Shown here: positions 5,373 through 64,000 of the stretch, in pieces
Layout of the letters: every line of letters begins with the position of its first letter
How positions within the stretch are numbered: the stretch's first letter is position 1
From: Paraphysomonas bandaiensis
Lineage: Eukaryota; Protista; Chrysophyceae
Reading direction: 5' to 3'
Assembly: GCA_965644295.1 (NCBI GenBank)
Contig: CBFFRP010000463.1
Span: 62,001 to 126,000, forward strand
DNA length: 64,000 nt
Position numbers and translations under genes: made by a program
The notes under the pieces: generated by a model
Told to the model about the DNA's origin: nothing
Databases searched by the model: none
The model's input: only the letters and a program-made list of their open reading frames with translations

Positions 5373-5736
5373 ATTTTGGTGATAGGAATATATTGACTGT
5401 ATAAGATCGGGTCTATATAGTTGAGATGATATGGATTTGGCGAATGACAATGAATGATAAGTGAGATTGATTGTAATTTATAATTCAAGCATTGAGTGTG
5501 AATTACATTCAGTCAATTGAATTTAAACATCCAACATGACAAACATTGATACTGCAAACAACAAACATTGCATCATATATCAATTATCATAATATTTCGG
5601 GAATTTCAAATACCTCGTGGAATATGTCCTGGGTAGAGTGAAGCTATTAGCATCACGTATTCCATAAATCTACAGTACCCATCGCATACTGAAAACGAAT
5701 TTATCTTAATGATTGTCCTGACTAATATCGCTACTC

Positions 5737-7961
5737 TTAAGAATATTTCGTATTAACTTTCTTCAACATGTGTTCGTGTGTACTAGCAATGCACTTGTCT
5801 GGGCTGAGCGTAAAAGCAACAAACAAACACTTTCACAGGTAAGATTAATTAAATATTATATACGCACATTAATAAACAGGAATACCGTATGAGTATGTGT
5901 CAAGTCCACCTCCCGACTAAGTTGAAGACATCCCTTGACAATAATGCTACGACACTTTAATAAAAATACACATTGTGTCAGCATTCTTACCTGCATTCTG
6001 CGCAGTCGTTTCATCTGCTGCTCCATTAGCCAGCTGTATGAGGTTCGTATTCGCTCTTCAAACTCATCTGCTATATTTCCCTTCACATTCTAGACAGCAG
6101 ATTACTACGACATCAACGACGTAAAGCACAATACCTCTGCGTGTTCAGAACCACTCGTAACAAGCGCACGCCATTGCTCCATGCGCCACTTGATATCTTT
6201 GACGTAATCTGGTACTTCTAAACGACGATGAAATATAGTCAGATACAGCTTCAGTCATCTATACCTTCAGTTTCATTCATCCCAACAAACTTCTTCCTGA
6301 TAGCCATCATCGATAGCTCAGATATTTTTTCCATTTTATCACACACTTCCTTCTCAAACTCCTGTAAACGCTCGGCGATGTCCTTTCTTAAGCCATCCAG
6401 TGAACCATGGATGGGAGGTACTTTGTCGAATGAGTCCTACATAAATAACGTAAGTTCAACTTGTCACCCATCCAGAACACAGCTGATACCCGAGAGAATG
6501 CCGGTGCATCGCACGATAGCACCCCGTCTTTAGTCCTAACTTTCTGCCTAAGTGCCCGGGGAGGCTTCCTAGTGGATAGGACTGGAGTGGAGAGTACTGG
6601 TCGATCGCGAGTCATCTGAACCTCTAGCGATGGGCCAGAAATGCGTTCGCTATTTATTCCCCTTGCGGTTGTGCTTTCTATTGTTGGTGTAACTGCCGCA
6701 GTCTTGGTTTCCTGTACATTGGCAAAAGGAGGTTCCTCTACTTCACTAATTTCTCCTACGTTCTTTACCGGTGTGTGTGATACTGCTTTCTCAGCCTGCT
6801 TCGCAGAGATGATTTCATCCCCTCTTTCCCAAAGCTCATCGAATGACAGAGAAGTGGGAGCATAAAAGCCAGAGTGAACTGTGGGCAGTGTCTGTGAGAG
6901 AGACAATCGCCGTTTTGTCCGTGGGCCACGAGTAGAACCTCTTCCCCCAGCAGAGTCACTGGTGATCCCTGCTCCAATGTCACATGAGGTAATCTCCCTA
7001 AGAAATGTTCTACACTTAAGCAATGACTCTTCCTGCATCGCCCGCGAGCTTTGCCTGGTAGCCTTAATTTCCTCCAGGCAACGTGTCGCATGTTCTTTGT
7101 ACATATTTTGCAGTCCCCGACACCACGCTGAGTACTGAGCTCGAGCAGAGAAAAAATCATCGTAGTTCCGTGATGTGAGCTCGCGGAGAAGGTGCAGCCG
7201 GGATGCCATGTAGTTCAGTAGTAGCAGATCTCCACTATCAGGGTTCTCAAGCATGCATCGCGTACGGTCTAATTGCTGTTGAAGATCTTCCATGCGTGAC
7301 TCCGCTTCGCGGGTTCTAGCCAATTGTGTCAGGAACTTTGACCGAGCACTCTCGAGGTCCTCCTTTTCCCTCTTGAACACGTCTTCTGCGAGCCCCGCAG
7401 CAGTCTTTGCCACCCTGTTTGATCATATTTAGAGAAATGATAATCATATATAAGCACTAACTTTCCATGAATCTGGTCTGTTGGAGCAACTTCATCTCTC
7501 TCGTACATACCGGTATCATCCTCTGTGACGGCAAACATCAGCGATTGTTTATCATTCATATCCAGGAACGACGCAATATATTTCAAGATTCTAGGCTCTT
7601 CTTTAGATAAAATCACTAATTTTGAATCCGTAACACTTGGACCCTCATGATTCGTGGGCTGTGGAGGAGGTTCAGGCACACTCGGGACAACATTCGGCTG
7701 CTGTGACTTGGCTAATGCGCTATATGTGGATGTACGATGCTGTGTATAGCATATTAATGCATTGAGGAGGATTACGTATCATATCATTGTATAACATACC
7801 GTACGAGATCGATTGACAGGTACAGGGAATACATCTGTTACAGTAGAGGGGAGAAGGTCGTGACAGTCCTGCTGTAGAGAGTCATGCGCATGAGCCGCTA
7901 CAAACAACTGAGCGGCTAGATTTTGATCAATGAATGTAGAGGAAGAAGATAATGATGACAT
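5737..7961 (-). CDS. Multi-exon hypothetical protein with coiled-coil segments
   Basis: Chain of minus-strand ORFs (7779-7961, 7329-7679, 6388-7413, 5856-6086) linked by short GT-AG introns; 3' end approximate. Confidence 0.7.
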
Positions 7962-25052: not shown

Positions 25053-26113
25053 TAAAATTTTGTACTCCCAAAGCAGCTTTGATATATGTATATAAAACAC
25101 GTGAGTTAAAAAGGAAATGAAAACAAGCTGGCTTCGAACCATTTGGTAATGTTACTAGCAGTATAAAGCACAGCTAGGGTATCATAAGTCACATATAAAA
25201 GTTTCAGTGAAGAGTAGATATCCTTTTGTGATAGAACAAAATTTAGACTATTCAGCAATGCAACAAAAATAGTGAAAGAAAACAGTAATTGTTTCAGACA
25301 AGACTGATACATTGATCAGGACAACGAGACAAACCATCAGAAAAATAAGGACGCAAGCACCGCAGTCTTCTTTTCACCAAATATTACCCAGTAGCATTTT
25401 ACGTTATACCGTCTAACACAAACTAATTACTATTTTCATGTAGTGTGTATTGAAGGCTATTGTCAGTCTCTCAGTGATCTTGGTAGTTAGTATTGAACTA
25501 CAACCAACTCCTACGTGCGTACTTGAAGTTTGGTAAAGCCAATCGCTAGTAGTTATCCTGTATTCTATGTAGCAATGAAATACAGAATATACATGATTAC
25601 AGTATAGGAGTAGCTATTACAAGTATACAAAGAAACTGAAAATATAGTAGCTGTTAAAGATATGATTTGTAGAACAGAATGTTGATGTTGGTGAATGACG
25701 TGGTTCCTAACTCACAGTGCTACAATATCATAAACTTACTATATCTTCTATAATATCAGTCAATACTGCACTAACTAAAAGCTTAAATTAATAGTTAGAG
25801 AGTCGTCATTGAGTATATCAAAGCTAGCATATATGTATACATCAACGACACTATGTATCACACGTCACCTGCTATTGCACTAACAATCATAGACAATCAC
25901 GCGACTCGCTTTCATAAGACCACGATGCAATACACAACGAAACTACAAACCCAGCCCATATGAAACACACACGAAAGGAGGGGATTCTTCGAGCCTGTAA
26001 TGATACAACGCTGGTTCCCGCTGTGCGTGTCTATGAATACTATAAACGCTGCTTCACACCACATAAATGCTTGTTGGTATTATATATAATATAAATTATT
26101 AGCATCATTGTAT

Positions 26114-27631
<1,518 letters not shown>

Positions 27632-28296
27632 TTAGGGTGATAGAGGATGATGAGGTTATTGAAAGGGGGAAGAGTTTGGTAAAGTGAAAGTGTTTGTATG
27701 GGTGTTTTCGTAACTATTATATGAACTTATATATATGTGTATAGATGTATGGATGGACCTACAGGCAAATCTGATTGGTGAATGAAGGGTCCATATGACT
27801 GACCATACAGCTGTATACTATTGCAGTCTGGTACAGCATACATGGCATACATGGACATATGTGCATGTTTTTGGGTGGATAGAAATTCATTGATCAATAA
27901 AATACAGGTGTAGGATGGCATCCCTACAGAGGAATACAGAAGGCCTCCACTCTCACATACCTCCTCAGAATACAGTTTTTATACACCGTATATTCATCAG
28001 TCTGCTGCTGCTACAGTCATAATTTTCCCTAATAATCTAGTGTCCGTTAAAGATACTTCAACTTCACCAGTAGCTTACATATGTCCGATGTCGGATAATG
28101 TTCTTTTGATAATACATTCGTTTCCCTTCATATACGTTTATGTCCATATCCACCATACACTGAGGTCTATAGGAGAGATCGCATGACATTGCTATGAAAT
28201 TTCTGTCATAATTAAACCAATTCATAATCTATAACATATTCACATATTTACGGTACATTACCACCAAAGTTCCCCTCATCATTACCCATCAATCCT

Positions 28297-54172: not shown

Positions 54173-55017
54173 AGTTCACTTGAAGGAGTTATGTGTTTAA
54201 AGTGCTTCTATACTTGAGTATGTATATGTACACATTCATATGAACCCACAACTGACTCTCTACGTCTCTATGTACAGCAGGAGTATTACCTCGATATGTA
54301 TACGTATATCTATCTATACGTATAGTAGACGTGGGAATGGACTACTGGAGGCTGTACCATACACTACATTTCCATAGTAAAATACTGCATACTCTGATGC
54401 CGTATACATATAGCATACGTAGAGCTAAATGATGATTCGGTATAGAAGTCTTCGAGTGATGGAAATGAAAGTCAATGTGCACATTCGTTTTTGTCACAGT
54501 GATTATGTTTTCAGTTATTGTACATGTGTGACTCTGTAGGATACGAGTGAGAGTGTACAGTAGAACATGATCAGCTGTAGTATTATTGTGTTGTAGGGAG
54601 ACACCATAATTTTCTATCACTAACGATTTCTGTAGTATTTGCAAAGAGACTTGTCTTTTGCCTACCTGTAGTGTAGTTTGAACGGAGGACAACGGGCGAA
54701 CTGGATCCGTGAGTGTTTGATTGATCTGTAGTATCAGTGTTGTATTTTCGATTCAAGTACGTATTTCTCTACGTGATAGGAAATTAGAGCCCGGTGCCGA
54801 TCAAGACACGGTTGGGGGGGTTTTTGGTGGTTCAGTGCCAGAATGGACACAGTGGAGGGTTTTTTGCTTTTTTGGGGGGTTTTCTGATCATTCCAACAAG
54901 CCCAAGTGTAGCTAACAAATCCATACATCAATTGCATTCGAAATAAGTCAAATATATCCACTTATTCAGTGATGAATTGTGATCCTGTATTGACTATGAT
55001 GAGATATTATTTTACTT

Positions 55018-57513
55018 ATGCACGTGATGGAACTCACAGAGGAAGGTCAAGCGTTTCCAGACTTTCAATCTATCATGAACCACATGCAACAGATAGCCAG
55101 TTGTGGAGGCACACGTACAGGAAAACAACTGCGACGCGATCCACATGTAGCTCAAGGAAGCAATAGAGTTACTATGATATGTATGAATCCAGCATGTGCT
55201 CTAAGATTATGTGCTCGGCGTAAGCGTGATAAAACATACTATATGGATAGTGCTGCAAGTATTAAGGAGCATTATGTGTTGAACGAGGATGGTATGAGAA
55301 TTCCTTGTGTCGTCTTCGGAAAAGCATCACAGGTTTATATATATATATATGAATGAACTTTTCATTATTCAGTTCTTCAAGAACGAGGTGTTGAACAATG
55401 AAAAGTTTGCAGTGATCATGAAGGATGTTGGAGTCGGTCCTCGTAATATTAGCACTACCCGCATTCAGGTGAGAACACACACACATCATTGCCATCATAT
55501 ACGAGCTATAATGTTCTTGTGATGCAAGGCATTTACTACTGTAATTTTGTATGAAAATCTTATGATATGGGAGGGTGAGAGAATGCGCCATTTATTAGTA
55601 TACCTACGCGTTTCTGTTCTCACCACTGAATACACAAATATATGAGTCGACACAAAGATATATCGCAATGTATAAAATATAAGTGCTCTTTTAACTAGCA
55701 ACTTCTGTTGGTTGATGGCATAAATGCCACGCCCGATGTGGTTAAGAAAGCTGCAGCACTCAGTCGAATTCAAGTAGAAGACCAATTGGGCAGTTTTTCA
55801 TTGCTAGAGCCATTTCTAGAGCTGTACAAAGAACAAAATCCCGGTGCTCATTACGAACTTCGCCGTAACGATATTACGGAGGAGTTTAATAGTTTAGCAT
55901 TTGTTTTTCCATACGTTAAGAATTGCATTGAACACGAGTACCTGAGGCGCATATTTGGTCTGGATGTTTCTCATATGAAGAAGATTTCCCTACAGGGCGA
56001 TATCATTATACGACCAATGTTTTTAACGGTTGTGAGTGGACGAACCCTTGATAATCACATGATAGTATGTGGGTTTGCAATAACATTTGCTGAATGTAGA
56101 GACGACATAGACTTTTTGAATGCAGCTATGATAGAAGCTGGGGTCGTTCTCAATGATCCACGGAATACTATTTTGAGTGACCGAGGTACTGCTGAGATAT
56201 CATTTCTACAGAGAAGTCTCCCGTTAGCCTTTGAATTTCATTGTGGAATTCATTTGGAAAGAAACTTGAAGAGCAAGGGATGGTCACATTGGTTGCCACT
56301 CTACTGGAAAGCACGCAATGCTCCAACTATCGTTGAACATATGAGATGTATGAGGTATGAGGTAAATGATTGCAATACAAGAGTAACATATATATACTTC
56401 TACTATAGTGTCATAGAATCTTCATGCAAACCGATGTATGAGTACCTAAGCAAACTCAACAACTGGTAGTTATACCAAGCTGTGGACACAGGTCATATGT
56501 TGTACGATTGGAAGAGTGATAATATTGTTGAAGCAATCTTCGCATGGTGCCGTGAAACAAGATTTCTGAATCCTTACATGTTTGTAAAGAAGTTTTTAGT
56601 TGATATATTAGAGAGTAATAACAGGCGGAAGGATGACATTGCTCGGTTGCAGACTGTACTCCATCCCCAAGCTGAACAACACTTTCATGTAATATCGCAC
56701 GTGTAAATTGTGCAATAGTAAGCTTAATATGTTAGGTAATGTGTATAATTGCTTACGTTCTAATATTTTATACTTGATAGGATATACAGAAAAAAGTCAG
56801 ACATTGTCCAATGGAGGTTCACATTCTCGATACTGTGAGCGAGCGAGGTATTGTGCATACCATCACGGATGCAGTGCATAGAAGCGAGTTGAGAAATGTG
56901 GACTTGTCTAAGCAGAAATGCGACTGTGGAAAGTATCAACAAACAGGACTACCGTGTAAGGATGCGTGGTTCCTGCTTAAAGAGTTGTATCCGAATGGAA
57001 TGCCACAAGACCTATTTTCGGAGAAATACTTCAATAAAGACTGCTTTACTATGAGAGTAAAAAATATGTTTGCAGACGTGCCTGAATTGTTAGGCACGAT
57101 TCCCTCTACTTCAGAAGTTGATAATCGATTGCGATCCAAATCGTTTAGGACTATCAAAGCTCCTCTTGCTAATGATTCCAAGTCTTACAGGAGTTCGAAA
57201 CGATTGACTAGTACCGGAGAAAGTTCTAGCAGGTGCTGTCAGATATATTTATTCTTATACATTTATAACGCACAACAGTTCTACTAGTCAGGCGTCATTC
57301 AAAAAGCAAAAGAAACAGTGTCCCGACTGTCACCAGTGGCTCTCGCGCAAGACGCTGCATCCCACCAGTGCATGTAGCAGGTATTGTATTCGAAATGGTA
57401 TGAGTCCGCCTGAGGTTATTCTTTCCGGCTATATTGACGAGTTGAGTTACCCTGATGATATCGCTGAGCTATCAGAATCGCCTGCTGAAGAAACTGCAAC
57501 ACACTTTAGTTAG
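55018..57513 (+). pseudogene. MULE transposase (intron-containing) with one in-frame TAG at 56467
   Basis: GLDVSHMK, ILSDRG, HCGIHLERN (MULE domain), SDNIVEA, SWIM-like CDCGKYQQTGLPCKD and C-terminal CPDC; ORFs 55708 and 56482 share a frame across a single stop; 5' exons approximate. Confidence 0.85.
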
Positions 57514-57920
57514 AAATCGGTTGTGTATTCCATATTTTTTGTGGCCGCATGTATATTATCGTTTAGTTGGGCAATTACATATCTTTAATTTTAACGAAAT
57601 GTGTCTTTACTGTTGTTGAGTTGTTGCTCAGTGATAAAATTCATGCACGGTAGTGTTTAGTGTTTTAAACTGTACTTGACTAGCTAGAACCTTTGTCATA
57701 CTACTAATAATATATGATCACATTAACCACTTCTTGTAATATTCTAGTTAGTTGAAATAACTTTTGTAATTCTGTGATAGCTAGATACTAGGGCTGATGT
57801 AAAAGAGTTTGAAAGTTGTCCTTATCTATACTCTATACAGTCATTGAAAATTTACATGTCATACACCCTGATAATACTAAACTGAAACCAAGACTATACA
57901 CACAGAACGGGGGGTAGGCG

Positions 57921-58212
57921 TGTTGAGATCTGAAGATTCTATATACTTGCAATTGAGTGCAGTATTATGTGAGATGCAAGGATCGAAAGATATATATGTA
58001 ATTAGTACATTATATTATGTAGTATGAAACTGAAGTAGAAGTGGATGACTATACAGGATACGATGACTGAGTGTGTGGTTGTACACTATAGTAGTAAATG
58101 AATGGTGTTGAACACATCGAACACAACTTAGGTTCTTTATCATGTAATGTTTATAATTTCATCTTATCAGTTGAGAATAGTAAACCTTAGCAAATAATGT
58201 CAACTTCTGTTA
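57921..58212 (+). repeat. 5' LTR
   Basis: Direct repeat of 59663-59954; starts TGTTG and ends TGTTA. Confidence 0.96.
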
Positions 58213-58392
58213 TGGTAGCGGATGGTAGTTGTAGGGATGGGGAAGATGACAAGAATCTACGGTTTGACAAGAACCAAGCAGACTATTCAGCGAGAAAAAT
58301 CAAGATGCATCTAATGAAGAAAAACCGAAACCATCTTGGCTTGGAGGACCCGCCAGCCGGAGGAAGGAATTTAGAGTCATGGAGAGAGCGTA

Positions 58393-59538
58393 ATGATACC
58401 TAAATTCATACGATCTATGCATTTTAAACCATGTGTATTAGACCCGTGTTTGTATTATCAGTATAAGGGCGATGAATTGATATTATTAACGATATATGTG
58501 GATGATATCCTAGTGTTAGGTCGTGATGTCAACATAGTGAAGGATATTAAAGCTCAACTGTGTGCCCGGTTTGATATGAAGGATATGGGCGAGATGGAAC
58601 ATTTTCTGAATGTTCGAGTCACAAGAACGCCAGAGTATATTCGTCTTGACCAATCAGTATATGCGGCTAAGATCTTAGAAAAGTTTGAAAAGTATCTTGG
58701 GCCACCGCGAAAGGTACGGAAGAGTCCTCTACCGGCGGAAGCAATGGATTTAGTGGCAAAAGGGGCGCGGCATGAGCATACCGAGGAGGAACAGCTTATA
58801 GTAGATAACTTCCCATATCGGCCGCTGATAGGTGCATTACTATATCTATCGATGAACACGAGGCCGGATATTGCCTATGCAGTGGGAGTACTGTCTCGGT
58901 TCAGTAATAAGGTGAATATTGAAGTATGCAAGCTATTAACACATGTATGGCAATATATTCGTGGTTCTATTGACAAAGGGATTCAATATGGGAGTAGACG
59001 GTTCGACTTCCATATGTTTACTGACGCGGATTGGGCGGGAGATCAGCTCTCCAGGAAGTCCACGTCGGGGTACGTTGGGTTTGCAGCGGGAGGGCCTATA
59101 GTCTGGCAGTCCAAACTGCAGACGACAGTGGCAACGTCAAGCATGCAGTCTGAGTATCAGTGTATTTACTCGGGTCTCCAAGAAGTGCTATGGGTTCGGG
59201 GGGTGACGGGTGAGATTAAGTTGAGGCTCATCAAACCCACACCATTCTTCATCGACAGTCAGAGTGCCCAGGATTTGGCCGAAAACCCAGTGTTTCACAA
59301 GAAGTCGAAGCACATTGAGATTAAGTATCACATGGTGAGAGAGCACGTGGATCCCAATCAGTTCAATACGATTAAGTTAGTGCATGTGCATACATCGCAA
59401 CAAGCAGCAGATATTTATACAAAGTCATTGGTTGGTTTATCATATATGGAGCAGAGAAAGAGAAATCTTGGAGAGAAAGTTAAGAGTTCCACTGAAGTGA
59501 TTAATGAGGGACCAAGGGATAAAAGAAGGCGCAAGTAG
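58393..59538 (+). CDS. Truncated Copia pol: C-terminal part of RT plus RNase H
   Basis: DPCLY, IYVDDIL, MKDMG, PYRPLIGALLYLSMNTRPDIAYAV, DADWAGD...RKSTSG, KHIEIKYH and ADIYTK; integrase, protease and the RT N-terminus are absent. Confidence 0.93.
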   Translation: MIPKFIRSMHFKPCVLDPCLYYQYKGDELILLTIYVDDILVLGRDVNIVKDIKAQLCARFDMKDMGEMEHFLNVRVTRTPEYIRLDQSVYAAKILEKFEKYLGPPRKVRKSPLPAEAMDLVAKGARHEHTEEEQLIVDNFPYRPLIGALLYLSMNTRPDIAYAVGVLSRFSNKVNIEVCKLLTHVWQYIRGSIDKGIQYGSRRFDFHMFTDADWAGDQLSRKSTSGYVGFAAGGPIVWQSKLQTTVATSSMQSEYQCIYSGLQEVLWVRGVTGEIKLRLIKPTPFFIDSQSAQDLAENPVFHKKSKHIEIKYHMVREHVDPNQFNTIKLVHVHTSQQAADIYTKSLVGLSYMEQRKRNLGEKVKSSTEVINEGPRDKRRRK

Positions 59539-59662
59539 GTACTGAGTTTTTTAGACAGAGGTTTAGACTTAGAGATGAGTCTATTTTACTGTCAAGAATT
59601 TTTTTATCTCAGGCATTCAATAGCTGGGAGGCGTCATAGTACAACACTCAATTGAGGGGGAG

Positions 59663-59954
59663 TGTTGAGATCTGAAGATTCTATATACTTGCAATTGAGT
59701 GCAGTATTATGTGAGATGCAAGGATCGAAAGATATATATGTAATTAGTACATTATATTATGTAGTATGAAACTGAAGTAGAAGTGGATGACTATACAGGA
59801 TACGATGACTGAGTGTGTGGTTGTACACTATAGTAGTAAATGAATGGTGTTGAACACATCGAACACAACTTAGGTTCTTTATCATGTAATGTTTATAATT
59901 TCATCTTATCAGTTGAGAATAGTAAACCTTAGCAAATAATGTCAACTTCTGTTA
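59663..59954 (+). repeat. 3' LTR
   Basis: Direct repeat of 57921-58212; no difference found by eye. Confidence 0.96.
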
Positions 59955-60637
59955 AGGCGTCCTGGGGGCACAATAACATTACTTTAAAAGGAATAAAACA
60001 GCTATATCTTTTAGTGTGTAGTCAAAAGTCAAAAGAATATCAATACACGAATTACAACATCATTAACAGAAGCACACAAATTCACTGTTATAAAAGTATA
60101 CATAATACCAACAGTATGGAACTATTCAAGCAGCCACTAATCTACCTTCTACGAGTTACTTGTGCTCTTGCATGGCGCCATAAGATTCATGTGGCAACAA
60201 AGGCAGGGGATGTCAATCAAAGAAGATTATAGATATGCCAATATTTACTCATATATTTCTGATTCCTACACCTGTTCATCTGAAAGACTCCTATATTCGA
60301 TCTCATCGGAGTATAAGAGTGGCTAGCAGGACTATGAATGCATGTTCTTCGAGATCTAGAAGCAACTGCTCCACGTTGGCCTTTTATAGCCCTAGCTGTG
60401 TCGATAGAGCATCGAGCTGGGTCCCTCGTCCAACTGGAAAGCCATTCACAGGGGAGTTGTGAACACAATGTACCTTCCTGCTTCTATATGTTGGCAGTGA
60501 GTGTGCTGTATGTTGGAAAGGAAAATGTCAGAAAACCCCCCAAAAAAGCAAAAACCCCTCCAATGTGTCCATTCTGGCACTGAACCACCAAAAAACCCCC
60601 CAACCGTGTCTTGATCGGCACCGGGCTCTAGGAAATT

Positions 60638-61174
60638 ATGAAGAAGTCGAGCAACGAGAAGCTCAAGAAGTTTAGGAACAAGGCGTTGGACCAGCGGTCC
60701 AGGGGCCAAGGGGCAGAGGCATTGACCCCAACGGTGCCGATTCTGAAGTATGGGACGAACACCAACCTGGCGGTATTTAAGCAGAAGCTCACAGTGGCCG
60801 CCATGATGCTATTTGGTGACCTAGCGAGGCTCGTGGAGACCGATGAGTATTATGAACCACCCAAGATAAAGATTGAGGACTACGATCTCGATAATGACCC
60901 CCACGGTCTGAACCTGGAAGAACTTAAGGATGCGAGAAAGACACGCCAAAGGAAGATTGACCAAATGCGTGACAACCGATCAGCTTTCTATGCGTTCATG
61001 TATGACAGACTGAGCAACGAGTCCGTGGACGCGATTAAGCAATTGGAGGAATACGAAGAGATTAACTCCTCCAAGGACCCTCTACTGTTGTGGCTTGCTA
61101 TCAAGCAGACTCACAAAACAGCGACGAACTCCAATGTAGGGACCATCATGCGTGCAGAGACGAGAAAGAAGTAC
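60638..61174 (+). mobile_element. Copia-type gag N-terminal part, interrupted at ~61175
   Basis: VPILKYGTNTNLAVFKQKL...FGDLARLVE...LSNESVDAIK...KDPLLLWLAIKQTH is gag-like; the ORF tail after RKKY is low-complexity read-through into foreign AT-rich DNA. Confidence 0.72.
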
Positions 61175-61327
61175 ACACACAGAGAGGGGGAGGGCCGAGG
61201 GGTCGCTCTAAGCCGCTTAGGCATTCTTCCTGAGCCAGAAAGGCTCTCGTATCGTAATAAAACTTCGTTTTATTACTCTTTCCTTTTCACTCTATCTTTC
61301 TTCCTTTCCACTCTATCTTTAAATATA

Positions 61328-61932
61328 ATAATTATCTTATATAATAATATTAATAATACTATACTTTAAATAAAAATTAATTATCTTATATAATAATATT
61401 AATAATACTATACTTTAAATAAAAATTAATTACTTTATATAATATTAAATAATTATCTTATAATAAAATAAAAATATAGTTTTGGCATTTTGGCTTTCTG
61501 GCATTTTGGCTTTTATGAAAATTAGAAAAAGTTATAAAATAAAATTTATTATATAGTTTATGTTATAAAAATCCAGTGCCATAATGCCAGTTGTGGTGGT
61601 GATGATGATGGTGGTGTTGTAACAGTGATGGTTATGTTATAAAAATCCAGTGCCATAATGCCAGTTTCTATTCAAAATATTTTTTCAAAATAATTTATCA
61701 AAAATATTTATTCTATTCAAAATATTTATTCTATTCAAAATAATTTATCAAAAATATTTATTCTATTCAAAATATTTTTTCAAAATAATTTATCAAAAAT
61801 ATTTATTCTATTCAAAATATTTATTCTATTCAAAATATTTTTTCAAAATAATTTATCAAAAATATTTATTCTATTCAAAATATTTTTTCAAAATAATTTA
61901 TCAAAAATATTTATTCTATTCAAAATAATTTT
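61328..61932. repeat. Tandem and direct repeat blocks in the presumed terminal arm
   Basis: ~49-bp duplication (aattatcttatataataatattaataatactatactttaaataaaaatt x2), ~35-bp duplication (ttatgttataaaaatccagtgccataatgccagtt x2) and a TTCTATTCAAAATA-based array at ~61665-61930. Confidence 0.9.
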
Positions 61933-62150
61933 TACGTTATTACCAATTAAAAAATTATTAAAAAGCAAAATGGTTTAAAGAGATAATTTTAAAAAGGCCA
62001 TGAAAGATGTCAAAAAGAAAAAACGGATGAAGGTTAATAAATAGTTGAATACACACACGCAACAAACAATAAACAAAATAGTTTTAAAAAATCGGCTCCT
62101 TTCTTTAAAGTATGATTAAAGTTTTAAAAAATATATAAAACAAATATATA

Positions 62151-62393
62151 ATGAGTTACACATATGTCGTTATTACAATTACAGATTTAGTTTGGAATAA
62201 CACAAAAATATATGAAATTTACAAAACAAAAATCACTAATCCAATAAAGTTCTCAGAAAAGGTTGATAAAAGAATAGAGATAATACGAAATAAAATATTT
62301 TCAGAAAATGATTATACCTCAGAAGATATTAAAAGATTTAATGAAGAAAATGAAATAAATTATGAGGAGATTGATAGTATTTATAATTTATAA
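62151..62393 (+). CDS. Small hypothetical protein (80 aa), putatively viral
   Basis: Intronless AT-rich ORF preceded by ATATATA immediately before the ATG. Confidence 0.6.
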   Translation: MSYTYVVITITDLVWNNTKIYEIYKTKITNPIKFSEKVDKRIEIIRNKIFSENDYTSEDIKRFNEENEINYEEIDSIYNL

Positions 62394-62413
62394 TAATTTA
62401 ATGTATTAGTGTT

Positions 62414-62563
62414 TTAATTTATAAAAATTAAAACTAAAAGAAATTTTTGAGTACAATTTGATAATTTTGTATGAATAAATTTATCGTTATCTTCATCATA
62501 ATAACCGTTTAATTCACTATCAACATGTCCACAACAATCAAAATATTTAATTCCATAACCCAT
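62414..62563 (-). CDS. Small hypothetical protein (49 aa), putatively viral
   Basis: MGYGIKYFDCCGHVDSELNGYYDEDNDKFIH...; preceded by ATATATATATA; below the size cutoff of the ORF track. Confidence 0.4.
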   Translation of the reverse strand: MGYGIKYFDCCGHVDSELNGYYDEDNDKFIHTKLSNCTQKFLLVLIFIN

Positions 62564-62590
62564 TATATATATATATGTTAGATAAAAATA

Positions 62591-63388
62591 TTACTCTGTT
62601 GTTGAATCTAAACTCCATGTATCACCTGTCAATCTAAAATTGATAGTGTTAAACATAATATAACCTGCTGAGGCAATAACAATTCTTATAATTGAATATC
62701 TTTTAGTTGTTGTAACTGCTTCAGTGAACAAAGTTGAATCTTGTGTTCCTGGAAATGCTACATCATCAATATAATTCCAAGTTGTGCCATCATCAGAACC
62801 TAATATATAGCATGCTTTCATTGTTCTCTCTTGTGATGTGCTTCTTTCTTGAGTTGATATAGATGTTAAACGAATTTTATAAGGTAATTGAACTTGAACC
62901 CATTCACCATCTATTGATTGAGATGTATCATATGTAGTTGAAAAATAATGATCTGTTCCATTACTACCGATGTAATTACCTGTTGTACCATCATAAGCTT
63001 CACCAGAAGGCATAGCATAAAAAACGCCATCTCTGTAATTGTCAATACCATTTGGTCCGCTGTTATATCTGTTATTACCCCAGAACGTCTCATCACTATC
63101 ATCAAATAATAAGTTACATGAATTTAAAGGGTCGGCTCCAGTATATCTACCATATGATGAACAAATTAAATTATATGTTCCATTTGCGTAAGATGTTGAA
63201 CCAGAACCGCCAGAATAAGATTTAGAAATGTGAGTATCAAAAACATCCTGACCATTAAAAGCAGTTGGAAGACCTGTAAATGATGTAGGAAAAGTGACAT
63301 TTGTTTGGTATTGTGTATTTGTATTACCTTGAACGACATTGTATTTGTTAATGTGATTAGCAATATTAATAATAGAACTTAGTGACAT
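62591..63388 (-). CDS. Discoidin/F5-8 type C (galactose-binding-like) domain protein, putative virion attachment protein
   Basis: LFDDSDETFW...GEWVQVQLPYKIRLTSI...R...YILGSDDGTTWNYI...RYSIIRIVI fits the discoidin-like fold pattern; intronless. Confidence 0.72.
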   Translation of the reverse strand: MSLSSIINIANHINKYNVVQGNTNTQYQTNVTFPTSFTGLPTAFNGQDVFDTHISKSYSGGSGSTSYANGTYNLICSSYGRYTGADPLNSCNLLFDDSDETFWGNNRYNSGPNGIDNYRDGVFYAMPSGEAYDGTTGNYIGSNGTDHYFSTTYDTSQSIDGEWVQVQLPYKIRLTSISTQERSTSQERTMKACYILGSDDGTTWNYIDDVAFPGTQDSTLFTEAVTTTKRYSIIRIVIASAGYIMFNTINFRLTGDTWSLDSTTE

Positions 63389-63460
63389 ATATATATTGAT
63401 GTTATAAAATAATTTGTAATTTTTACATTAAATAATTATATAGTATAAATATATATAACC

Positions 63461-64000
63461 ATGAGCATTTACCCAAAGCCGAAACCATCAAACGGAGTAT
63501 TCAACCCTTCAAATTACACATATATAAAAGATAGCATTGTTGACGTTGACTTAACAGGATATATTCAAAAGAGTGGAGATGTAATGAGTGGAACTCTAGT
63601 TTTGCCATCATTGAATTTATATGGAGATGGACAAGTATCATTCAATGACAATTCAATACAAACAACAGCAATGACAGATGCTTTAAAGACAGATATTGAA
63701 AACACGAAAACAAAAGCTACTAATATTTCATATGATGGAACAAATACATCAATTTCAGGAAGTGTTGAAGTATCAAAAATAATATTTCCAAATCTAAGTG
63801 AACAAACAGTGGCCTTTACAAATAATTTAAAAACAACATATGATAACTATGAAACAGGAAAACAAGATTTGATAACATCAGGAAATAGAATAAGTTGTAG
63901 TTTAATAGGAGATGGATTAATAACAAATGATGAACTAAACAAACTAAATAATGTTTCATCAAACATTCAAAATCAATTAGACGCCTTAGGACATGGTTTA
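63461..64000 (+). CDS. Fibre/tail-fibre-like protein, N-terminal 180 aa (open at the window end, absent from the ORF track)
   Basis: Manual translation MSIYPKPKPSNGVFNPSNY...GYIQKSGDVMSGTL...FNDNSIQTTA...FPNLSEQTVA...KQDLIT...ELNKLNNVSSNIQNQLD has no stop; the motifs are typical of viral fibre shafts. Confidence 0.75.
   Translation, partial: MSIYPKPKPSNGVFNPSNYTYIKDSIVDVDLTGYIQKSGDVMSGTLVLPSLNLYGDGQVSFNDNSIQTTAMTDALKTDIENTKTKATNISYDGTNTSISGSVEVSKIIFPNLSEQTVAFTNNLKTTYDNYETGKQDLITSGNRISCSLIGDGLITNDELNKLNNVSSNIQNQLDALGHGL

Follow-up and report, generated by a model that had tools for sequence, protein, structure and literature searches.

The AT-rich block at positions 61175-64000 of the Paraphysomonas bandaiensis DNA analysed here (the window: 64,000 nucleotides of contig CBFFRP010000463.1) probably comprises the left arm and first genes of an endogenous virus of the polinton-like/virophage supergroup, carried in a transposon-rich stramenopile genome. 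The whole virus would be a double-stranded DNA element of roughly 18-25 kb. The window itself contains no hallmark genes. The assignment to this supergroup, made in the preliminary description from the window alone, is upheld by marine relatives that are 95-97% identical to the block and carry an A32 ATPase, a capsid, a protease, an rve integrase, and a helicase. The features of the block and its flank are listed in Table 1.

Table 1. Features of the AT-rich block and its host-side flank (positions within the window)
Feature	Position	Strand	Basis or remark
Copia RVT_2 fragment	58393-59538		between the copies of a 299-bp direct repeat
Host-side flank ORF fragment, 179 codons, ending at the junction	60638-61174	+	ORF list
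AC/AG dinucleotide run at the junction	61173-61186		14 nt; unique within the window
GC-rich tip, 84 bp, 57% GC	61175-61258		composition
Perfect hairpin, 10-bp stem, at the GC-to-AT transition	61254-61276		sequence
Distal non-coding arm	61280-61665		repeats of 21 bp (x2), 49 bp (x3), and 8 bp (x4.4)
Tandem array, 266 bp, periods of 45, 95, and 108 bp	61666-61931		repeat search
Unique non-coding segment common to marine relatives	61932-62119		identity to L004-L006 and L015
80-aa ORF, function unassigned	62151-62393	+	ORF list
Remnant of the 135-aa accessory gene of the relatives, with one truncation	62414-62563	-	comparison with relatives
Discoidin (F5/8 type C) domain protein, 265 aa	62591-63388	-	Pfam
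AT-rich divergent intergenic spacer between the discoidin and fibre genes, 72 bp	63389-63460		sequence
Fibre-like gene, first 180 codons, open at the window end	63461-64000	+	ORF list, relatives

Junction and host-side flank

The abrupt junction reported at 61175, and the higher AT content of the block relative to its flank, are both confirmed. GC falls at this position from about 45-50% to 25.6%, and the dinucleotide run and GC-rich tip are present. The 1-kb windows left of 61000 have a mean GC of 0.409 (sd 0.045, minimum 0.325), against which the block (0.256) has a z value of -3.4, and the lowest GC of any 2.8-kb stretch to its left is 0.343. A G-run adjoins the AC/AG run; a 14-nt dinucleotide run with a G-run is the kind of place where assemblers misjoin. 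The tip may represent the end of the virus, filler DNA, or a further piece of host DNA, and has no match in the window, in any of the loci, in IMG/VR, or in the JGI metagenomes.

The ORF that ends at the junction sits downstream of an LTR-like repeat. The 299-bp direct repeat (57917-58215 and 59659-59957) flanking the Copia fragment is 99% identical between its copies. The interrupted ORF had been called gag, an identity that Pfam does not bear out, as no family, including gag, matches it even at E 10. It is gag-like by position only, following the LTR-like repeat and lying beside a Copia reverse transcriptase fragment. No tRNA or Rfam family occurs in 60000-64000, and the rest of the window shows no virus-like ORF.

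Non-coding repeat arm

A non-coding repeat arm of about 950 bp was described earlier and is found here, with repeats and about 900 bp devoid of coding. The non-coding DNA from the GC-rich tip to 62150 has a GC content of 17.8%. The distal arm also includes two 34-bp direct copies (61559-61592 and 61633-61666), and the core of this repeat is absent from the JGI metagenomes. The distal arm is unmatched in the relatives, whose contigs end within the next tandem array. Since 61175-61665, tip included, matches no relative, the virus boundary may be anywhere from 61175 to about 61666.

Units of the tandem array also terminate contigs L005 and L006, and recur between a 99-aa gene and the capsid gene in L009, L011, L012, and L015. 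The inner end of the array with part of the unique segment (61829-62092) is 95% identical to L006, and 61767-62119 is 89.5% identical to L005, while the inner end of the unique segment is 98% identical to L004 and 94% to L015. The arm is similar in length to the terminal repeats of endogenous mavirus-like elements, whose median is 0.9 kb (PMC8547959), and may be a terminal repeat with end-recognition or regulatory sites. The genome ends or inverted repeat of the relatives are not reached, as the far-left (L013, L014, and L016) and far-right (L020, L021, and L024) contigs share only an intergenic motif of about 80 bp. More distant relatives in IMG/VR have long inverted repeats that are internal to their contigs rather than terminal, and thus give no model of the terminus.

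Genes of the block

The 80-aa ORF has 64% amino acid identity to a partial gene in L008, which is reversed in orientation relative to the discoidin gene. The 135-aa accessory gene, of which the window has a remnant, is kept at full length in L006, L008, and L013-L019. The earlier identification of a discoidin-like protein is supported by a match to PF00754 (F5/8 type C) with E 3.6e-9, above the curated cut-off. The protein is 97% identical to P0001, the cluster of which has 30 members; exact look-up finds no identical copy, the nearest cluster members being 97% identical. It is likely a glycan-binding virion or adhesion protein.

The fibre-like product is 96% identical to that of L009, and is 351 aa long in the relatives. 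Its N-terminus is common to 141 representative proteins, many of which are long and contain internal repeats. A full-length relative gives a confident model for the C-terminal domain only, which has a weak likeness to TNF/C1q-type trimeric knobs and to phage fibre or needle knobs. The fibre relatives match no Pfam family, and the fibre protein matches no PDB sequence. The name fibre-like has weaker support than the discoidin assignment. The discoidin protein and a trimeric fibre would serve as virion-surface adhesins, and their genes would be transcribed divergently from the AT-rich spacer between them. Upstream of the relatives' genes, heptamers made up of A and T only (TATATA type) are enriched. 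The block was also said to look intact, which holds for the open discoidin ORF and the 180 fibre codons but not for the small accessory gene.

Marine relatives and their hallmark genes

Positions 62454-64000 are 95.5-97.3% identical to the marine metagenome contigs L003-L008 and L015. Members of the lineage turn up repeatedly in marine metagenomes, Tara among them, where each gene is represented by tens of contigs at an identity of at least 90%. In IMG/VR, neither protein scans nor two exact patterns from the arm find a close relative. The relatives are also present in size fractions below the size of flagellate cells, for example the Tara fractions of 0.1-0.22 and 0.45-0.8 um, which makes free particles probable.

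In the relatives, the fibre gene is immediately followed by that of a Pox_A32 packaging ATPase (PF04665, E 1e-17). In L009 and L020, the further order after the ATPase is the genes of 470, 152, 296, and 99 aa, the capsid gene, a 262-aa gene, the protease, a 181-aa gene, and the lipase-like gene. The relatives also contain an adenovirus-type cysteine protease (Peptidase_C5, PF00770, 24.1 bits against a cut-off of 21.3), an SF3 helicase (DUF5906/VapE, E 3e-13), a lipase or alpha-beta-hydrolase-like gene of 228 aa, and an rve integrase match with E 7e-6, which at 26.7 bits is under the curated Pfam cut-off of 32.6. The 562-aa protein P0295 was modelled at pLDDT 86.6, and its top Foldseek matches are the capsid proteins of mavirus, Faustovirus, Sputnik, and PBCV-1 (E 1e-11 to 1e-10), with the solved virophage capsids 6g44 and 3j26 among the best fold matches. 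By its predicted fold, P0295 is a double jelly-roll capsid protein. The Sputnik and mavirus capsid chains in PDB are found neither by a single sequence nor by a 38-sequence profile, even at E 10. The gene just before the capsid gene, of 296 aa (293 aa in L030 and L034), is a penton candidate, with no Pfam or PDB sequence match.

The termini had been described as suited to protein-primed replication. This is not supported by the relatives, as no Pfam match to a protein-primed family-B polymerase occurs in their scanned proteins, a set that omits a few small or partial genes and the genome ends, and the SF3 helicase is present instead. The 470-aa and 447-aa proteins of the relatives match no PDB sequence. 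Polymerase motifs seen by eye in the 447-aa protein are backed by no tool, and this candidate was rejected.

The gene order is conserved in the more distant kin L030 and L034. L030 lies within a 374.9-kb contig, in which GC climbs at the right edge from about 0.23 to 0.35-0.43, and the integrase of L034 is of the rve+Chromo type. Most relatives have an integrase-helicase block of about 5.5 kb beside the 135-aa gene, which the window copy lacks on its arm side.

Host and transcripts

The RIO2 gene of the window equals an MMETSP transcript with 0 mismatches and has two small introns. Its best named kin are from Ochromonas and Ectocarpus. The discoidin transcripts L031 and L032, from the same JGI sample (3300017004) as the RIO2 transcript, have about 96% identity to the window copy and a non-viral leader of 41 nt in common. 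The discoidin protein of the window agrees with the transcript product P0144 in 139 of 140 residues, and one transcript from Paraphysomonas has 83% identity. The culture holds a second, transcribed discoidin copy, about 4% diverged and with a broken ORF, and this decayed copy looks endogenous.

Integration and alternative explanations

Integration into the chromosome at 61175 is likely, and the call rests on one visible junction, which is located on a low-complexity run. The other end of the element, with its inverted repeat and target duplication, would be beyond the window. Via an integrase of the kind seen in the relatives, the copy would have entered the chromosome and landed in an ORF of an LTR retrotransposon. 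By analogy with endogenous virophages and polinton-like viruses, it may remain silent up to infection of the cell by a helper or giant virus; dependence of this element on a giant virus is suggested purely by that analogy, and no giant-virus sequence is linked to it here.

An assembly chimera is an unlikely alternative. In this case, virus DNA present in the culture in free or episomal form, as in a persistent infection, would have been fused to host sequence at the low-complexity run, and this site would have no integrated virus. The position of the junction on the AC/AG run followed by the G-run, the 84-bp GC-rich piece that matches neither side, and the probable free particles of the relatives in sub-cellular size fractions are all consistent with it. 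In contrast, the copy in the window is arranged in a way of its own and has one accessory gene truncated, and the second copy in the culture, with its divergence, broken ORF, and non-viral leader, also argues for endogenous DNA. Moreover, repeat-rich DNA is the usual insertion target of such elements (PMC8547959, PMC10120064), and similar low-GC insertions close to retrotransposons are numerous in chrysophyte genomes (PMC10120064).

The form seen in the window, with the arm beside the adhesion genes and without the integrase-helicase block, occurs both in the chromosome of this protist and in marine metagenomes, there in four or more independent contigs. That it is a circulating non-autonomous derivative is rather doubtful; if true, the element would be a hitch-hiker on complete relatives and not a simple dead copy.

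It is quite improbable that the block is a dead fragment, composed of the arm and a few adhesion genes and ending soon after 64000 without a capsid module. The truncated accessory gene, the missing integrase-helicase block, and the decay of the expressed second copy would fit this, and truncated forms are known among endogenous mavirus-like elements (PMC8547959). However, the discoidin ORF and the 180 fibre codons are intact and 96-97% identical to marine relatives, and L006 and L015, with the same arm-to-discoidin linkage, run on through the ATPase and beyond.

A host AT-rich island or an insert derived from a giant virus, with discoidin and fibre genes of cellular or nucleocytovirus origin, is hardly credible: discoidin domains are common in cellular proteins and the capsid fold is also found in giant viruses, but the near-identical contigs all have tightly packed genes without introns, and both their sizes and their gene content (one capsid gene, a protease, and an integrase) are those of small viruses, and the window has no further virus-like ORF. 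On the size and gene content of these contigs, a giant-virus origin was rejected.

Comparison with known elements

Gossevirus (GKS1) group: For the endogenous polinton-like or virophage-type virus favoured here, this group of polinton-like viruses (Bellas & Sommaruga 2021, PMC7805220; Bellas et al. 2023, PMC10120064) is the best fit from gene content and stramenopile host. The group carries virophage core genes (PMC7805220, PMC10120064), a protease, and a lipase, and its stramenopile hosts include Paraphysomonas (PMC7805220). The relatives likewise have the four virophage-type core functions, present or with a candidate and including the cysteine protease, and a lipase-like gene. Their capsid lacks sequence similarity to virophage capsids while its fold is close to those of Sputnik and mavirus, a combination also described for the group (PMC7805220, PMC10120064). 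The stramenopile host with its Paraphysomonas transcriptome link, and the location of a low-GC element beside retrotransposons, are also in line with the group. The group was, however, defined from an alpine lake, and the relatives are marine. The relatives also carry an rve integrase, whereas the group shares a tyrosine recombinase cluster with virophages and has rve in only some members (PMC7805220/PMC10120064).

Endogenous mavirus-like elements: The elements of Cafeteria burkhardae (EMALEs, PMC8547959) also form low-GC islands in the host chromosome. Further common features are a terminal arm of about 0.9 kb that is devoid of coding, the rve integrase (here in the relatives), frequent insertion close to repeats, and a close association with retrotransposons. 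There, retrotransposons insert into the virus, whereas here the virus appears inside a retrotransposon. Unlike in EMALEs, no protein-primed polymerase is seen in the scanned proteins of the relatives, and the capsid profile finds no mavirus capsid by sequence.

Virophages and Polintons: The relatives resemble virophages (Maveriviricetes: Sputnik and mavirus) in capsid fold, A32 ATPase, C5-type protease, and genome size, and differ in their capsid sequence, which shows no similarity to the solved virophage capsids. With Maverick/Polinton elements they share an rve integrase, which has a chromodomain in L034, as well as a double jelly-roll capsid, a protease, and an ATPase. The SF3 helicase, in place of a family-B protein-primed polymerase in the scanned proteins, differentiates the relatives from these elements.

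Significance

Endogenous polinton-like viruses and virophages have been documented in large numbers in chrysophyte-type protists (PMC7805220, PMC10120064). The kind of element is therefore not new, and calling it undescribed was an overstatement. The apparent landing of a virus in a retrotransposon is the reverse of the usual nesting. Through the chromosomal copy and the transcripts, a marine virus lineage is linked, with an identity of 95-97%, to a cultured MMETSP strain. A marine virus population that had been anonymous gains an assigned host and a locus for reference.

Gene content of the marine relatives

The AT-rich block at 61175–64000 is viral: it makes up one end of a small DNA virus from a capsid-forming lineage. 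Positions 62454–64000 are 95.5–97.3% identical to contigs of marine-metagenome relatives, and the hallmark genes found in these relatives bear out the core idea of the preliminary description, a virus of the polinton-like or virophage kind. Capsid, ATPase, and protease genes form the morphogenetic module of the lineage, which also has a gene for integration and one for a helicase. Gene order was read in the window orientation by walking contigs with members of the discoidin cluster; overlapping contigs were compared, not assembled. It runs helicase (648 aa), 107 aa, 447 aa, integrase (351 aa, opposite strand), 97 aa, 135 aa (opposite strand), discoidin (opposite strand), fibre (351 aa), ATPase (231 aa), 470 aa, 152 aa, 296 aa, 99 aa, a repeat-bearing spacer, 562 aa, 262 aa, 164–166 aa, 181 aa, 228 aa, 124 aa (opposite strand), and 107 aa. 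This order, which continues into further genes, spans at least ~18 kb.

The 562-aa protein belongs to a family of 63 relatives. Its AlphaFold model (pLDDT 86.6) has its best fold matches in the major capsid proteins of mavirus, Faustovirus, Sputnik, iridovirus, and PBCV-1 (E 1e-11 to 1e-10); in BFVD, it also matches capsids from virophages, adintoviruses, and giant viruses. The protein is, as modelled, a capsid protein of the double jelly-roll type. The 231-aa ATPase matches Pox_A32 (E 1e-17), the 164-aa protein matches Peptidase_C5 (24.1 bits against a cut-off of 21.3), and the 648-aa helicase is DUF5906/VapE-like (E 3e-13). For the 351-aa integrase, the rve match (E 7e-6) falls short of the curated cut-off; L034, a more distant relative, has rve and a chromodomain. 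The 228-aa protein is lipase/alpha-beta-hydrolase-like. The conserved 447-aa (contig L001, 2631–3974) and 470-aa (contig L006, 332–1744) genes have no Pfam or PDB sequence match, and the 470-aa protein is highly charged. No protein-primed polymerase family was matched among the relatives' proteins scanned in Pfam, and the proposed link to protein-primed replication is thus unsupported.

Distant relatives keep the order ATPase, two genes, ~293-aa gene, ~75-aa gene, capsid, ~230-aa gene, and protease. One of them, L030, lies inside a 374.9-kb contig, and GC rises from ~0.23 to 0.35–0.43 at the right edge of its block. The occurrence of relatives in the Tara fractions 0.1–0.22, 0.45–0.8, and 0.22–3 µm, according to record names, argues for particles outside cells.

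An ~80-bp intergenic element (80–87% identity), absent from the window, occurs in the marine relatives at 6461–6545 of contig L013, with copies preceding the 107-aa, 447-aa, and helicase genes and the 124-aa gene of contig L020; it is a candidate shared promoter region. Two distant IMG/VR relatives in the capsid family have long inverted repeats, at about 1674–2455 and 11709–12301 in L040, and about 5421–5888 and 14714–15088 in L044. These lie ~9–10 kb apart, internal to 18–20 kb contigs and not at the ends. This arrangement may reflect permuted contigs or an invertible stretch enclosed by the repeats.

Junction, repeat arm, and variable corner

The composition break and the anatomy of tip, arm, packed ORFs, and discoidin gene had been described accurately, as judged from GC, repeats, ORFs, and Pfam. 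Left of 61175, GC in 1-kb windows has a mean of 0.409 (sd 0.045, minimum 0.325). The block has a GC of 0.256, and the lowest 2.8-kb stretch to the left is at least 0.343. The element is probably integrated in a host chromosome, on the basis of one junction that falls on a low-complexity run.

Features of the block and its host-side flank
Feature	Position	Strand	Remarks
RIO2 gene	26103–27709		identical to MMETSP transcript P0412 (0 mismatches); introns 44 and 46 nt
Mutator-like DNA transposon fragments	55018–57287		weak DBD_Tnp_Mut and MULE matches; SWIM zinc finger above cut-off
299-bp direct repeat	57917–58215 and 59659–59957		99% identical; brackets Copia RT fragment
Copia RVT_2 fragment	58393–59538		between the two 299-bp copies
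Interrupted ORF	60638–61174		begins ~680 bp past second 299-bp copy
AC/AG dinucleotide run	61173–61186		spans junction; single occurrence in window
GC-rich tip	61175–61258		84 bp, 57% GC; directly after junction
Hairpin	61254–61276		perfect 10-bp stem at inner end of tip
AT-rich non-coding arm	after GC-rich tip		~890 bp, 17.8% GC; several repeat families: 21 bp x2, 49 bp x3, 8 bp x4.4, two 34-bp copies
Tandem array	61666–61931		266 bp, within arm
80-aa ORF	62151–62393	+	
49-aa ORF	62414–62563	-	truncated remnant of relatives' 135-aa gene
Discoidin ORF	62591–63388	-	265 aa; F5/8 type C domain E 3.6e-9, above curated cut-off
Fibre-like ORF	from 63461	+	open to window end; 180 codons in window

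Positions 61175–61665 have no match in the window, in any locus, in IMG/VR, or in JGI metagenomes, so the virus boundary may lie anywhere between 61175 and ~61666. Left of the discoidin corner, the relatives have more than one linkage. The integrase–helicase block lies to the left in seven contigs, directly past the discoidin gene in L001, and past the 135-aa gene in L013, L014, and L016–L019. The window and contigs L004, L005, L006, and L015 have a unique non-coding segment (window 61932–62119) and then the tandem array, inside which these four contigs end. Between the discoidin gene and this segment there are zero, one, or two small genes: none in L004 and L005, the 135-aa gene in L006 and L015, and, in contig L008, both the 135-aa gene and a gene homologous to the window 80-aa ORF. 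In the window, the 135-aa gene is reduced to a remnant by one truncation, and the 80-aa ORF is present but runs opposite to its orientation in L008. Truncation of this accessory gene tells against the intactness first ascribed to the element. In L009, L011, L012, and L015, array units also occur within the spacer that precedes the capsid gene, and the array is thus a repeated intergenic element, not solely a terminal one. The arm would act as a terminal repeat carrying recognition or regulatory repeats.

The window codes for a kinesin, a RIO kinase, a sulfatase, and a C2H2 zinc-finger protein, and is therefore eukaryotic nuclear DNA. The 8 kb preceding the junction is a transposon graveyard. 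The Mutator-like fragments lie directly upstream of the retrotransposon remains, making the landing zone a transposon nest. A 107-bp piece just before the interrupted ORF (60524–60630) has an inverted copy of 96% identity 5.7 kb upstream (54785–54892), which, with the 299-bp direct repeat, suggests recombined or tandem LTR elements. The interrupted ORF had been labelled gag; it has no Pfam family match even at E 10, and fits gag by position alone. An rve-type integrase would have inserted the copy into this repeat-rich chromatin.

Discoidin and fibre proteins

The exact window discoidin protein is absent from the records in an exact look-up. A 97% identical protein, P0001, heads a 30-member marine-metagenome cluster, and a fragment in the Paraphysomonas transcriptome MMETSP1103 is 83% identical. 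The fibre N-terminus (180 codons) matches 141 representative proteins, many of them long and matching repeatedly over residues ~132–176, a pattern that a shaft built of repeats would give; a gene sharing this N-terminus is present in the distant relative L034, too. The model of P0280, a full-length fibre relative, is poor overall (pLDDT 59.6), except for a C-terminal beta-sandwich (residues ~245–351, pLDDT about 80–90) that lies beyond the window. This domain has a weak likeness to TNF/C1q-type trimeric heads, cyanophage fibre domains, and the Sf6 needle knob (E 1e-4 to 1e-3). The discoidin and fibre proteins are putative virion-surface adhesins, and their genes would be transcribed divergently from a 72-bp spacer. 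AT-only TATATA-type words are enriched ahead of the relatives' start codons.

Host and expression

The mismatch-free RIO2 transcript shows that the window comes from an MMETSP strain. The best named kin of RIO2 are in Ochromonas (61%) and Ectocarpus (55%), and the host is thus a stramenopile, probably close to chrysophytes. The very short RIO2 introns are transcript-confirmed, and tiny introns may typify the host genome.

In JGI sample 3300017004, also the source of the RIO2 transcript, two transcripts (L031 and L032) cover the discoidin gene and its flanks. They mismatch the window copy at 41 of 1003 aligned bases (~96% identity), and their discoidin ORF is broken by two deletions in L031 and three in L032. 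Bases 1–41 of both are an identical, GC-richer, non-viral leader with no counterpart in the window. Most simply, the transcripts would stem from a second copy at another genomic site, now decayed, with transcription from a host flank; they may also be products of chimeric transcript assembly. The leader joins inside the antisense of the fibre gene, and may mark a second host–virus junction elsewhere in the genome.

Relation to known systems

The element is a candidate member of the Gossevirus (GKS1) group of PLVs, which fits it best. This group has the full virophage core gene set with its protease, as well as lipase genes; its capsid protein has a Sputnik-like modelled fold but no sequence similarity to virophage capsids, and its hosts are stramenopiles, among them Paraphysomonas and Ochromonas from transcriptomes (PMC7805220, PMC10120064). 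Similarly, the relatives' capsid profile retrieves no virophage capsid from the PDB at the sequence level, yet the folds match. A strict virophage is rejected on capsid sequence, and a Maverick/Polinton on the polymerase, for the genome portion seen. Analogy to endogenous mavirus-like elements and to PLVs (PMC8547959, PMC10945749) suggests that the element is a latent provirus-like copy. Its kind is less novel than first proposed, as chrysophytes are already known to have low-GC endogenous copies with terminal repeats and adjacent retrotransposons (PMC10120064). A recent preprint (10.1101/2025.06.17.660233) cites single-cell genomes of marine chrysophyte clade H that contain endogenous virophage-family elements. 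The main value of the finding is that an anonymous, widespread marine virus population is tied to a cultured host strain.
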